64,000 bases of DNA from Selaginella moellendorffii. Taxonomy: Eukaryota; Plantae; Lycopodiophyta. The stretch covers positions 330,792-394,791 of the forward strand of contig NW_003314368.1 of NCBI RefSeq assembly GCF_000143415.4, written 5' to 3'. Positions 29,492 through 33,027 of the stretch are shown piece after piece. Made by a program: the position numbers and the translations under genes. The stretch's first letter is position 1; every line of letters begins with the position of its first letter. The notes beneath the pieces are model-generated. The model did not search any database and was not told the origin of the DNA. It saw only the letters and a list, made by a program, of their open reading frames with translations.

Positions 29492-32400
29492 ATGGAGGCG
29501 CTCCAGGCGGTGGCGTCGCTCATCCAGGGCGCCCAGGCGCTGCTCCAGGGCGTGGAGGCTCTCTCGCGGGCGTCCAGGGATCTCTCCGAGGCTCCCCAGA
29601 AGATCGCCCAGTTAGAGGAGACGCTGGGCGATCTGACCAAGCTCCACGCCACGCTCCTCCACAACCACAGCTCCAAGCTCCACCATCCGGAGCTCCTCGC
29701 TCAGCTCCATAGCTTCGAAGCTCTCATCCGCGACGAGGACTTCCAGCTCGGCCGCGCCAAGAAATTGGTGCTCCTCCGTCGCCGCAAGGGACCGCTCAAG
29801 ATGAAGATGTATCTCAACGTGGTGGTCACTGCGGTCACTGGCGACGAGCTCTCGGAGATCGTCAAGTCCATGAACTCCCAGCTCCTTGAGTGGATCAACA
29901 AGAACAGCATCAAGGCCACCATCGCCAAAGCTTTCGACAAGACGGCCGAGAAGCTCACGAGCTATCTCCGGGTCCAGGCCCAGCCGGGCTACCACCCGGT
30001 GGCGTCCAAGGCCCGGAAGATCCGAGCTCTCCTCGAAGACGAGACGAGCTCCTCGCGAAAGGTGGTGCTTATCCATGGACTGTCCGGGATGGGAAAATCG
30101 TGCCTGGCTCGCTACGTTGCCGCGGATCCGCCCAAGCGATTCGTGCATGGAGCGGTGGATTTGCTGCTCGGGCAGGGGTGTAGCCGCCGGAGCGGAACTC
30201 CCGAATATCACTCGCGGCTAGCGGCAAAGCTCTGCCATTTGTTGCGAGTTCTCGGGAGGAAGAGAGGAGAGATAGATGGATTGGATTTGGAGGAGGCTTG
30301 CCAGCTTCTACAGGAGACGTTGCTCGGGAGGAGCATCCTGGTGGTGCTGGACGACGTGTGGGAGCCGGATATCATCGCGAGGTTCACGCGGCTGTATGAC
30401 AACGAATGCCGGTTCCTGGCCACGACGAGGAACCAGGCGGTGTATGAGACGACGACCGAGGCTGAAAAGGTGGAGATTGGCACCGAGGATGTGTCAGAGC
30501 TCAGCCGGGGGATCTTGATGCAGCACAGCCAATTGTCCGAGGAGGAGCTACCGGTAAGCTTTCCATCTCTTGCCTTTTTCGTTCCTTCCTTCTTTCGTTT
30601 GATCTTCTTCTTGCGTGCCTGATCCTTTTGTCGATCTTTGGGTAGTGTCTTCCTTTTCATCTTTTTCTTTCCGCATTGTATCTCCTTTCGATTCATTCTT
30701 TTGGCGTGATCTTCGTCCTGATCATGCATTTCTATCTTCCAAAAACTCTCTTTTTCTAACACAAAACATAACAGGAGGCCACAACCGAGCTGCTAATCCA
30801 GAGATGCGGCCACCACCCTCTCACTCTCGCAGTCCTCGGCAAAGCTCTCTTCAAAGAGACCCGGCCCGAGCAGTGGGACAAAGCTCTGGACGATCTAAGC
30901 ACCTACGCGGCCCAGGCCCCCGTCCCAGTCCACTACCTCAACGACAAAGAAGCCGAGAGCGCCGCCACCGTCTTTGGCTCCTTCGACTACAGCCTCCACG
31001 CCATGACCACTCACGCCAGAGATCTCTTCCTCTCTCTCGCAGCTCTCTGCTGGGCCACTCCAATCCCCGAGCCTTGCCTGGAAGCGATCTGGCAAGCTCT
31101 CCATCAAGACACCACCTTCCGGATCGTCTCTTCCAAGCTCTGCGACAGCTCCCTTCTCAAGCGATCCAGCTCCAGCGGCAGCGACACCTTCCTCCACTAC
31201 ACCGTCCACGACATGGTGGCGCTCTTCCTCGAGACCAAGATCGAGGAGTCCATCGCGCTGCTTCTCAAGGAGCACTCGCTCATCCACGCCGAGTCCCGTG
31301 CCGCGATCGTCCCGTGGCTCTACCGCTTTGGCAACCGGAGGATCGTCAAGCTCGCGGAGGACTCCCTGGTGGAGGTGTTCTGGTCCAACAGCGAGGAGCT
31401 CCCCGCGATCGTTCTGTGGAACGTGGTGGAGGTGCTCTCCACGAGCAGCACGATGGCGGAGCTCGAGGCGGCGTCGATCGGGTTTAGCCGGATCCTGGGG
31501 CCGGAGCTGGCGAGGCTGTTCTTGCTGGGATTCGAGGACTTGCATGCCGCGGTGGCGCGCTGCGTCGCGAATTGCTTCGCGCGATCCGACTACGAGCGCC
31601 ACACTTTCGCGCTCGTCCAGGCGGGAGCTCCCGAGAAGCTGGCGGTGCTCGTGAGGAACCACGAGGAGTTCCATGTAAGGCGAGACGCGGCCATGGTTCT
31701 CGCCAGGCTCGCCGAGTTCCGCCACGACGCTTGCGAGGAGATCATGCGAGAGGTGCCGCTCAAGGAGGTGGTGGAGCTGCTGGATCCCCGCGCGGAGGAG
31801 ACGCACAACCCGGTGATCGATTCGCTCATGACGCTGGCGCGCGCCGGGGAGGAGGTGGCGGTGAGAGAGATCTTCCTGGCCGGCGCCGGGAAGAAGCTCG
31901 AGGAGATGCTGCTCAGTGGATCGGAGATCGCCCAGCAGCGAGCGATCGTGGCGCTCAAATCTTTCCACGAGCTCGGCGGCTCCTCCGTCCAGGGATTCTT
32001 GCGAGGCTCCGGGATCCTCCTCCGGCGGGAGCTTCCATGGCAGGCCAAGCTCAGCCTCGAGAGATTGACAGTGCTGGATCGAAAATCATCGTTTAACCAG
32101 CGGTCGTCGAGCAGCGCTCCTGCCAAGCGGCACTGGATCGCGCAAAAGGTGGCGGTGCTCCGGGATGGATCCGAGATCGAGCAGCTGCGAGCGATCCAGG
32201 AGCTGGCCCCGGCGATGGAGCGAGCCGGAGCCGGAGATCCACAGCTTCTCGACTCTATTCTCTCCACCAGTCTCATCGAAGTTCTAGCGGCAAAGCTGGA
32301 TCAAGCCGCGAGCCCTTCTCCAGCGAGTTCTTCCTCTCGTCAGATCAAGCACGCGAGCAACCGGATCAAGTCCGAGGCTTGCTTCGCGCTCGTCAAGCTC

Positions 32401-33027
32401 TCCGCGGGTGGAAGCCGGTGTATCAAGATCATGATCAAGGCAAAGGTGGTGGACAACTTGGTCGTGGCCATGGCTTGCAGCGCCAGCTCCGCGCTCCAAG
32501 AGGGTGCATACTCAGCCCTCCACAACCTCGTCTTCACTGGGCGCCGGCTCGTCACCGATCAAATCCTCCGCGGAGGAGGAGGAAACCTGGTGGATCGAGT
32601 TCTCGGCCTCTTGGACGCTGGCTTCCAGATCGGGCTCTACTGCGTCCAGGACCTGGTGGAGATTGGAGGCAAGGAATGCATCGAGAGGCTCCTGGCGGCG
32701 CGAGTGGTGGAGAGATTGGTGGCGCTGGAGGGAAACTCCAGCAGGATGATCGGTGGTGGAAAGTTTCGAGACTCGGTAGTGGAGTTTGCCAAGCTTGTGG
32801 GGAAGTCGAGTGGATTGTCTGCTCAAGAACACCGGGTTCTCAACTCGCAGCTCGTGAGGCACGCGAGAGCGGCGGTGAAAGATCCCAAACAGATGGGGAA
32901 GATCACGAGTGTGCTGAAAACTAGCTACGAGCGTGGAGAGGGATCGGGATCTGGATCATCGGGATCTGGCTCCGCCAAACGGAGGAATTCTTTTGCTGGC
33001 TCACATTCCTCCGCTGTAAACTTCTAG
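29492..33027 (+). CDS. Non-canonical NLR-like STAND protein: N-terminal helical bundle, NB-ARC, ARM-like repeats (~1104 aa; exons 29492-30553 and 30775-33027)
   Basis: P-loop GLSGMGKS; Walker B LVVLDDVW; RNBS-B CRFLATTRN; GLPL-equivalent CGHHPLTLAVLG; MHD-equivalent VHDMV. C-terminal ARM-like repeats (AGAPEKLAVLV, AGAGKKLEEML, AKVVDNLVVAM); no LRR. Phase-0 GT-AG intron. Confidence 0.92.

Follow-up and report, generated by a model that had tools for sequence, protein, structure and literature searches.

The gene at positions 29492..33027 of the analyzed window, a 64-kb stretch of Selaginella moellendorffii DNA, is a member of the conserved vascular-plant CC-NB-ARM family to which rice RLS1 also belongs. 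The sequence comparisons indicate that it is probably orthologous to the other members of this family, including RLS1, and it most likely encodes a nucleotide-dependent molecular switch; we put the probability of this overall reading at about three in four. The order of domains is a helical (CC) N-terminus followed by an NB-ARC domain and armadillo (ARM) repeats, without leucine-rich repeats (LRRs). The gene opens no new class of system, since the CC-NB-ARM class is already known. A CC-NB-ARM or NBS-ARM family conserved in plant genomes has been named (PMC12512272), and members in rice and S. moellendorffii have been reported (PMC8559963). RLS1 is a genetically characterized regulator of cell death and defence in rice (PMC10030324). 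Thus, the description as a poorly characterized class in a first-pass annotation of the sequence is overstated.

Gene structure and expression

All features described here lie on the forward strand. Exon 1 (29492..30553; 354 codons, aa 1-354, phase 0) contains the start codon and encodes the N-terminal bundle together with the NBD portion of the NB-ARC. It is followed by an intron of 221 nt with GT..AG ends (30554..30774, phase 0). Exon 2 (30775..33027; 750 codons plus stop, aa 355-1104) encodes ARC1/ARC2, the ARM solenoid and a Gly/Ser-rich tail. Joining both exons from the list of open reading frames and the sequence gives a predicted product of 1104 aa. This product is 99% identical to NCBI LOC9634115 from S. 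moellendorffii, to which both exons align gap-free and contiguously over the junction 354/355. The gene start agrees with the conserved family N-terminus MDALQ/MEALQ in the alignments.

In transcript contigs of four runs, each from a different study, exactly these 221 nt are missing, with GT..AG at the ends, and exon 1 of these spliced contigs stops at 30552/30553. Because intron-less contigs were recovered from four studies, the gene is expressed, and the two-exon structure is real. Transcripts were present in ordinary Selaginella samples of several studies. A pseudogene or artefact was ruled out, as the frame is intact, the transcripts are spliced and the sequence is conserved. The earlier reading of an intact 1104-aa gene with a complete NB-ARC is therefore borne out by exons, spliced contigs, Pfam and motifs together. 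A tblastn search with the protein revealed no second copy and no paralogue cluster within the 64-kb window. A divergent second paralogue, LOC9639551, exists in Selaginella.

The NB-ARC domain

The NB-ARC domain (29987..31257; aa 166-515) comprises NBD, ARC1/HD1 and ARC2/WHD and is interrupted by the intron. Pfam NB-ARC was matched with an E-value of 5.5e-12 on exon 1, and the match extends into exon 2. The P-loop GLSGMGKS (30077..30100; aa 196-203) is a GxxxxGKS variant, which among the analyzed Oryza R-gene homologues is peculiar to RLS1 homologues (PMC13621481). Walker B/kinase 2 is represented by LVVLDDVWE (30338..30364; aa 283-291), in which L286-E291 are invariant columns, and a TTR motif lies at aa 311-313. 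GHHPL (30808..30822; aa 366-370) is the family's counterpart of GLPL, and VHD (31204..31212; aa 498-500) that of MHD. Both replacements had been noticed in the first-pass annotation; they can be read directly in the sequence and both proved to be family signatures. GHHPL is nearly invariant in the family alignments, and VHD is found in Selaginella and most dicots with MHD in grasses. L372, two residues past GHHPL, corresponds to the site of the rice RLS1-D mutation V366A. Taken over 36 orthologues, the catalytic and switch motifs are intact and conserved. Identity to seed-plant orthologues is 49-58% for the NB-ARC, and 57% for the NBD across the lycophyte-angiosperm split.

A family profile searched against the PDB aligned to APAF-1 over NBD-HD1-WHD with an E-value of 3.7e-19 and 72.6 bits, whereas the same profile reached 33-45 bits on plant CC-NLRs, over NBD-HD1 alone. 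At the level of sequence, APAF-1 thus ranks first among the solved relatives of the NB-ARC, by score and not by phylogeny. An earlier suggestion had placed the protein nearer to NLR-like proteins of fungi and bacteria than to NBS-LRRs. It is partly borne out, in that the profile scores far better on an animal APAF-1 than on plant NLRs. Foldseek matches of the full-length model also include Apaf-1, CED-4, NRC2 and ZAR1. Several database entries of the family are automatically named 'Apoptotic protease-activating factor 1'.

The C-terminal ARM solenoid

The C-terminus forms an ARM/HEAT-like alpha-solenoid (31288..32940; aa ~526-1076) of about 11-12 three-helix repeats. In a sequence search of the PDB it matched designed armadillo proteins and importin-alpha with E-values down to 6.5e-13. 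An AF2 full-length model predicts an all-helical solenoid with pLDDT 80-94 over most of the ARM region, for which the Foldseek matches are ARM proteins; this model has a pTM of 0.47 and low inter-domain confidence. A Pfam search gave no match to LRR families at E<=1. The ARM-like repeats that had been recognized where an LRR would be expected were thus confirmed by sequence and by Foldseek. The solenoid consists of two blocks, with the conserved LPWQAKLSLERL stretch (aa 774-785) lying between them. The ARM region of Selaginella is collinear with that of seed plants, at 30-41% identity.

The N-terminal bundle

For the N-terminal domain (29492..29977; aa 1-162) a four-helix bundle is predicted, with helices at aa 2-27, 34-59, 66-98 and 119-162 and a short one at aa 105-116. 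Helix alpha1 (29495..29572; aa 2-27) is rich in small residues and is the best-conserved stretch of the domain. Q5, A10, Q12, A20, A23, L24 and A27 are nearly invariant, with Q5 and Q12 one heptad apart. Its hydrophobic moment is 0.377, compared with 0.165 +/- 0.082 in shuffled sequences, of which 0.8% reach 0.377. The amphipathic character ascribed to this helix before is therefore real.

Among 38 family N-termini, Pfam at E<=10 gave no match to Rx_N, TIR, RPW8 or HeLo and returned coiled-coil noise alone (e.g. Flagellin_N, Laminin_II, BLOC1_2). Searching the PDB with a profile of the N-terminal alignment gave nothing below E 0.06, and NCBIfam gave nothing relevant. Comparison with three Rx_N CC domains by hhalign, using a very shallow comparison profile, resulted in a probability of 0.7%. 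When 1.84 billion proteins were searched exhaustively with the profile, 26 matches were returned, with no CC-NLR among them. Nearly all matches belong to the family itself or to a sister family without NB-ARC; they include four identified fern and gymnosperm members and several short fragments of unchecked identity. By sequence searches, the domain was detected in vascular plants only. Foldseek with the N-terminal model against the PDB found nothing at E<=0.001, just designed or generic bundles. Designed bundles, chemoreceptor sensor domains and FAT-like bundles made up the 50 best structural matches, which included no NLR CC, MLKL or HeLo chain. By eye, the MADA consensus is not evident, as MEALQAVASLIQGAQALLQGV misfits MADAxVSFxVxKLxxLLxxEx. 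According to the model, the domain would share with NLR CC domains only the general four-helix-bundle fold. Of the pore-type N-terminus proposed earlier (CC/MADA, RPW8 or HeLo/MLKL), the generic fold thus stands; no similarity by sequence or profile and no specific structural match in the top 50 turned up.

A sister family without NB-ARC

The second ARM block with the C-terminal helices (32131..32916; aa 807-1068) is homologous to a vascular-plant sister family of ~400 aa. These proteins have the same N-terminal bundle as well as the last ARM block, and lack the NB-ARC. A sister-family protein matches LOC9634115 by BLASTP, and comparison with the sister-family alignment by hhalign gave a probability of 99.2% (E 1.8e-19). 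Since the bundle occurs here without NB-ARC, it should have a role that needs no STAND ring. Tentatively, the N-terminal bundle may form one ancient two-part module with the last ARM block, and CC-NB-ARM proteins may have arisen by insertion of an APAF-1-like NB-ARC, plus the first ARM block, between the two parts of this module. If this is true, the RLS1-type death or stress switch originated separately from the NBS-LRR clade, and its output mechanism would be unlike that of CC, TIR or RPW8 domains, possibly by docking and release of bundle and ARM block. A complex prediction of the bundle (aa 1-165) with ARM block 2 (aa 800-1076), made without family alignments, gave an ipSAE of 0.01 and is evidence neither way.

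Family membership and conservation

Family members of ~1040 aa with the same three-part layout were found in conifers, Amborella, monocots and dicots. They are collinear with the Selaginella protein over 96-99% of its length at about 37-45% identity. Homologues in other land plants had been anticipated, and they were indeed found across vascular plants. Orthologues from grasses (Urochloa, a maize cluster, a barley/wheat cluster, Eleusine and Paspalum) are 36-38% identical to it across 96-99% of the query, and that of Brachypodium 37% in the alignment. The Selaginella protein carries the family signature of GxxxxGKS P-loop, GHHPL replacing GLPL, and (V/M)HD. The features of a canonical NBS-LRR, a C-terminal LRR and a CC of Rx_N type, a TIR or an RPW8 domain, were not found. 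In a quick NB-ARC tree with few outgroups, 25 members form one family clade (SH-aLRT 99) apart from the CC-NLR and bacterial NB-ARC outgroups, and the tree largely tracks the species tree. Grasses have one copy per subgenome, RLS1 is single-copy across Oryza (PMC13621481), and several copies, partly arranged in tandem, occur in ferns. Judged from these comparisons, the family is low-copy and has been retained from lycophytes to angiosperms. The earliest-diverging members found here are this gene, its paralogue LOC9639551 and a partial match from Diphasiastrum.

The link to RLS1 is based on the grass orthologues, on two marker residues in the maize orthologue, V366 within GHHPLTV and S994, and on the published description of RLS1 as a 1040-aa CC-NB-ARC-ARM protein (PMC10030324). 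The first rls1 allele (S994F) was described by rapid leaf senescence and chloroplast degradation. The RLS1-D allele (V366A) confers resistance along with HR-like death that depends on light, and requires and binds the secreted CRRSP (DUF26) protein RMC (PMC10030324). RLS1, the only studied member, thereby ties NB-ARC activation to light-dependent death and ROS control via a secreted DUF26 protein. The family as a whole represents a plant STAND lineage without LRRs, low in copy number and conserved to an unusual degree, which resembles APAF-1 more than NLRs. The lycophyte sequence pins residues that were kept for >400 million years, namely alpha1 with Q5/Q12, the EAP turn, GHHPL, VHD and the LPWQ..LERF segment, and is therefore useful for structural and mutational design on the family.

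Proposed mechanism and alternatives

From STAND/NB-ARC biology and rice genetics we infer a switch cycle. At rest, ADP would be bound through the P-loop together with the GHHPL helix and the histidine of VHD, and the ARM solenoid may keep the protein closed; the full-length model places the domains relative to one another with low confidence. Binding of an endogenous partner to the ARM surface, or its loss from there, would allow ADP/ATP exchange. Given the strong purifying conservation (57% NBD identity), the ARM ligand is more likely to be a conserved partner than a set of variable effectors. The NBD-HD1-WHD module could then oligomerize, as in APAF-1 and plant resistosomes. This would cluster the N-terminal four-helix bundles, which would relay a cell-death or ROS signal at the plasma membrane.

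The output step could also be of a ZAR1-like kind, in which alpha1 leaves the bundle after oligomerization and builds, on its own, a funnel in the membrane or a pore permeable to Ca2+. The modelled bundle with its free N-terminal helix, and the amphipathic, well-conserved alpha1 with nearly invariant Q5/Q12, are consistent with this, as are the location of rice RLS1 in the plasma-membrane fraction and the killing even of yeast by RLS1-D with RMC (PMC10030324). However, similarity to Rx_N, RPW8 or HeLo did not appear in Pfam, PDB profile or 1.84-billion-protein searches, the hhalign and structural results were as weak or generic as described, no MADA consensus is apparent on inspection, and the sister family has the same bundle without NB-ARC. 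In addition, rapid death requires RMC, and RLS1-D without it gives weak and late death in N. benthamiana (PMC10030324), so that a self-sufficient executor fits poorly. We consider such a pore unlikely.

The role of the switch may likewise differ from that of an immune receptor. Because the S994F allele was described by senescence and chloroplast degradation, the physiological role may lie outside immunity. The protein could be a conserved switch with a housekeeping or stress function (in senescence, chloroplast turnover, redox or high-light signalling), with cell death as a gain-of-function by-product. Low-copy, orthologue-like conservation, the species-tree-like tree and the Oryza singleton, all unlike effector-sensing NLRs, point in this direction, together with transcription in ordinary Selaginella samples. 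RLS1-D death is also high-light-dependent and linked to lower APX1 activity; yet RLS1-D raises bacterial blight resistance (PMC10030324). Conserved helper and hub NLRs exist too, so conservation alone leaves an immune role possible, and we regard the housekeeping reading as possible but doubtful. Very improbable is a classical, fast-evolving, effector-recognizing R protein with ARM repeats replacing LRRs. The NLR-like domain logic with sensor repeats after the NB-ARC, the fern copies and the divergent second Selaginella paralogue would suit it, but the collinear, conserved ARM region, the single copy per grass subgenome and the absence of a paralogue cluster in the window speak against it.

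Comparison with known systems

MLKL 4HB, fungal HeLo and RPW8-CCR domains are N-terminal helical bundles like that of the Selaginella protein, but have no sequence or profile match to it and are absent from its 50 best structural matches. TIR-NB-ARC-TPR proteins (TNPs) have been named beside CC-NB-ARMs (PMC12512272). By description, they too form a conserved plant lineage of NB-ARC proteins that lack LRRs and end in an alpha-solenoid, set apart by a TIR N-terminus and TPR repeats. Plant CC-NLRs (ZAR1, Sr35, NRC, MLA) have the same order of NB-ARC motifs and an N-terminal four-helix bundle of similar size. In contrast to them, the family is strongly conserved and low-copy, without LRR or detectable Rx_N similarity. 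In both plant CC-NLRs and RLS1, cell death results from gain-of-function mutations close to GLPL. Proteins of the APAF-1 family combine a CARD with NB-ARC and WD40 propellers. With APAF-1 and CED-4, both matched by Foldseek, the Selaginella protein has the NB-ARC alone in common; it carries a four-helix-bundle N-terminus and an ARM C-terminus, and domain searches gave no matches to CARD or WD40. Rice RLS1 (NOE2, LOC_Os02g10900) has the same three-part layout and belongs to the same length class (1040 vs 1104 aa), and the RLS1/NOE2 family shares with the Selaginella protein the GxxxxGKS P-loop, GHHPL, (V/M)HD and the NB-ARC clade. The Selaginella protein differs from RLS1 in L372 where rice has V366, in VHD where grasses have MHD, in short insertions at aa 94-99, 486-494 and 866-880, and in a longer Gly/Ser tail.

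Gene structure and transcription

The gene spans two long open reading frames in different frames, 29492-30622 (+) and 31003-33027 (+). It was modelled with exon 1 at 29492-30553 (+; 354 codons, phase 0), a 221-nt intron at 30554-30774 (+; GT donor at 30554, AG acceptor ending at 30774) and exon 2 at 30775-33027 (+; 750 codons and a stop). The exons sum to 1104 residues, in agreement with the intact gene claimed by the first-pass annotation. When the exons were searched separately, exon 1 was identical to the 1104-aa NCBI entry 'uncharacterized protein LOC9634115 [Selaginella moellendorffii]' at 351/354 positions and exon 2 at 744/750. 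Both alignments were gapless and contiguous, meeting at residues 354/355. The gene is already annotated as LOC9634115, and the nine substitutions resemble variation between alleles or haplotypes. Full-length analyses were run on this database protein (P0001).

In public assemblies of four runs from four studies, whose run type is RNA by guess only, contigs covering the gene skipped exactly 221 nt with GT..AG ends. One 3369-nt contig spanned 29433 to 33022, and none of the contigs in these assemblies covered the intron. Since the contigs lack the intron, the gene is transcribed and spliced as modelled. In one run (X1), contigs have a CT..AC joint at 33021-33108, a GT..AG intron on the minus strand. 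Minus-strand contigs also abut the stop-codon region, which suggests a convergent transcript that overlaps the gene at its 3' end.

The neighbouring genes are ordinary ones. An F-box-like ORF (28646-29164, -) lies just upstream and is divergently transcribed; the window further holds two PPR proteins (25255-27432, +; 54906-57032, -), a WD40 protein (10368-11678, +), an Rtr1/RPAP2 protein (48099-49229, -) and a GDSL lipase (7340-8233, -). No NLR cluster was found in the 64-kb window. Long AT-rich stretches (~28-30% GC) lie at 1-2000 and 12000-20000.

NB-ARC and ARM domains

Pfam detected an NB-ARC domain in exon 1 (E 5.5e-12) that runs on into exon 2. It carries the P-loop GLSGMGKS (aa 196-203), Walker B LVVLDDVWE (aa 283-291), TTR (aa 311-313), GHHPL (aa 366-370) and VHD (aa 498-500). 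Among 36 orthologues H368 was invariant and H367 and P369 nearly so; the MHD position reads VHD in most family members and MHD in grasses. The family NB-ARC profile scored 72.6 bits on animal APAF-1 (E 3.7e-19), extending through the WHD, and at most 45 bits on the solved plant NLRs NRC, MLA, Sr35, ZAR1, ADR and Roq1, covering NBD-HD1 only. The single sequence also placed APAF-1 above the plant NLRs. Both rankings are by similarity score and not a phylogeny. Several family members carry the automatic name 'Apoptotic protease-activating factor 1' in their database entries.

No LRR family was matched in Pfam, even at E<=1. The C-terminus matched designed armadillo proteins and importin-alpha by sequence, with E down to 6.5e-13. 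The full-length AlphaFold2 model (pLDDT 73, pTM 0.47) contains a continuous alpha-solenoid at about aa 526-1076, built of ~11-12 three-helix repeats and mostly at pLDDT 80-94, and a Foldseek search with it returned ARM proteins, Apaf-1, CED-4, NRC2 and ZAR1. Pfam, the motif alignments, the ARM matches, the model and the fold matches thus confirm what the first-pass annotation had described: NB-ARC motifs with GHHPL and VHD, and ARM repeats, not LRRs.

The N-terminal bundle

Residues 1-195 were modelled with a 38-sequence alignment (pLDDT 81, pTM 0.65), giving helices at 2-27, 34-59, 66-98, 105-116 (short) and 119-162. The N-terminus is predicted to be an up-down four-helix bundle, as had been proposed; because the model folds in this way, the absence of a bundle, named earlier as evidence against the proposal, was not encountered. 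The fold itself is not diagnostic. The first helix, alpha1, was claimed to be amphipathic, and its hydrophobic moment was indeed 0.377 vs 0.165 +/- 0.082 for shuffles. It is the best-conserved stretch of the domain, in which Q5, A10, Q12, A20, A23, L24 and A27 hardly vary; at the first turn, A34 and P35 do not vary at all.

Foldseek of the N-terminal model gave no match at E<=0.001. Pfam found no Rx_N, RPW8 or HeLo in any of 38 family N-termini (E<=10), a PDB profile search with the N-terminal alignment returned nothing below E 0.06, and hhalign against three Rx_N domains gave a probability of 0.7%. When the N-terminal profile was run exhaustively with HMMER against 1.84 billion representatives, only 26 proteins reached E<=0.001; in this search the domain was found only in vascular plants, and no CC-NLR was among the matches. 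The matches checked were family members, their fragments, a sister family and two coiled-coil-like false positives (P0140, P0142); the 26 include several further short fragments. Based on these searches, the domain is family-specific at the sequence level.

Family distribution and an NB-ARC-less sister family

A word search with profile follow-up recovered collinear ~1040-aa proteins of the same layout from Cryptomeria, Amborella, Aristolochia, aroids, an orchid, Wolffia, many grasses and many dicots, with 37-45% identity to the Selaginella protein over 96-99% of length. By domain, identity was highest in NBD/ARC1 (57-58%), followed by ARC2 (49%), the ARM region (35%) and the bundle (32%). Grasses have one member per subgenome (maize, barley, three wheat homeologues, Brachypodium BRADI_3g07580), and Ceratopteris has at least five copies. 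In an NB-ARC tree the family formed a single clade (SH-aLRT 99) whose branching is largely that of the species tree, with the window's gene on a short branch. A second, divergent Selaginella paralogue elsewhere in the genome, LOC9639551 (SELMODRAFT_429717; P0123/P0147), is 38% identical to the window's protein, has GHHPL, IHD and a shortened ARM region, and sits on a longer branch.

The N-terminal profile also matched 416-539-aa proteins of Psilotum, Adiantum, Ceratopteris and Taxus, that is, ferns and a gymnosperm, and N-terminal similarity of the sister family was shown only in such members. In BLASTP, aa 19-169 of the Selaginella protein (window 29546-29998) matched the N-terminus of Psilotum P0131 and aa 806-1066 its ARM part, so that the alignment leaps over the NB-ARC as well as the first ARM block. 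Searching with these proteins recovered at least 362 proteins of ~400 aa from ferns to angiosperms, conifers included, named 'ARM repeat superfamily' or uncharacterised. The sister profile (A9) matched the last ARM block of the family at 99.2% probability, and the C-terminal end is conserved as ...GLRxREKRAxKQEIL...AEVLW(A/G)P. Among members P0131, P0132, P0139 and P0141, the shared ARM block corresponds to window 32131-32916 (aa 807-1068).

Possible mechanism and relation to rice RLS1

The family already has a name in the literature. ARM-type repeat domains have been reported in S. moellendorffii NLR-like proteins (PMC8559963), and a fern study, citing rice RLS1, lists a 'CC-NB-ARMs' cluster that is 'conserved in plant genomes' (PMC12512272). 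RLS1 (LOC_Os02g10900) is a 1040-aa CC/NB-ARC/ARM protein of the plasma-membrane fraction. Its gain-of-function allele V366A (RLS1-D) causes high-light-dependent HR-like death and resistance independently of SA, NPR1 and RAR1; death requires the DUF26 secreted protein RMC, which RLS1-D binds, and co-expression of both is lethal to N. benthamiana leaves and yeast. A second allele, S994F, leads to rapid leaf senescence (PMC10030324).

The protein probably acts as a nucleotide-driven, oligomerising STAND switch, a reading supported by its intact, conserved motifs and by the resemblance of its NBD-HD1-WHD to APAF-1. In such a switch the bundle would provide the output, and regulation or ligand binding would fall to the ARM solenoid. 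That the family is conserved in an orthologue-like way speaks for an ARM domain that reads a conserved partner from within the plant rather than variable effectors, and the rice work suggests a DUF26 protein and control of ROS/APX. Alpha1 might form a pore: an amphipathic, conserved helix and the plasma-membrane location of RLS1 would fit, whereas the lack of similarity to known executor domains, the dependence of RLS1-D on RMC and the same bundle in proteins without NB-ARC do not. A predicted complex of the bundle with ARM block 2 gave no verdict.

The architecture-level interpretation of the first-pass annotation was right. Calling the class poorly characterised and functionally novel went too far, since the family has a name and genetic work exists on one of its members. 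With family and gene already described, interest is modest; what still merits following is how the bundle acts, along with the sister family that lacks the NB-ARC.

The link to RLS1 was made through the maize orthologue (1041 aa), which has V366 within GHHPLT-V as well as S994, and through published descriptions. RLS1 is reported to occur as a single copy throughout Oryza and to be set apart by a GxxxxGKS P-loop (PMC13621481). The Selaginella protein carries this P-loop variant too. At the position of rice V366 it has L372.
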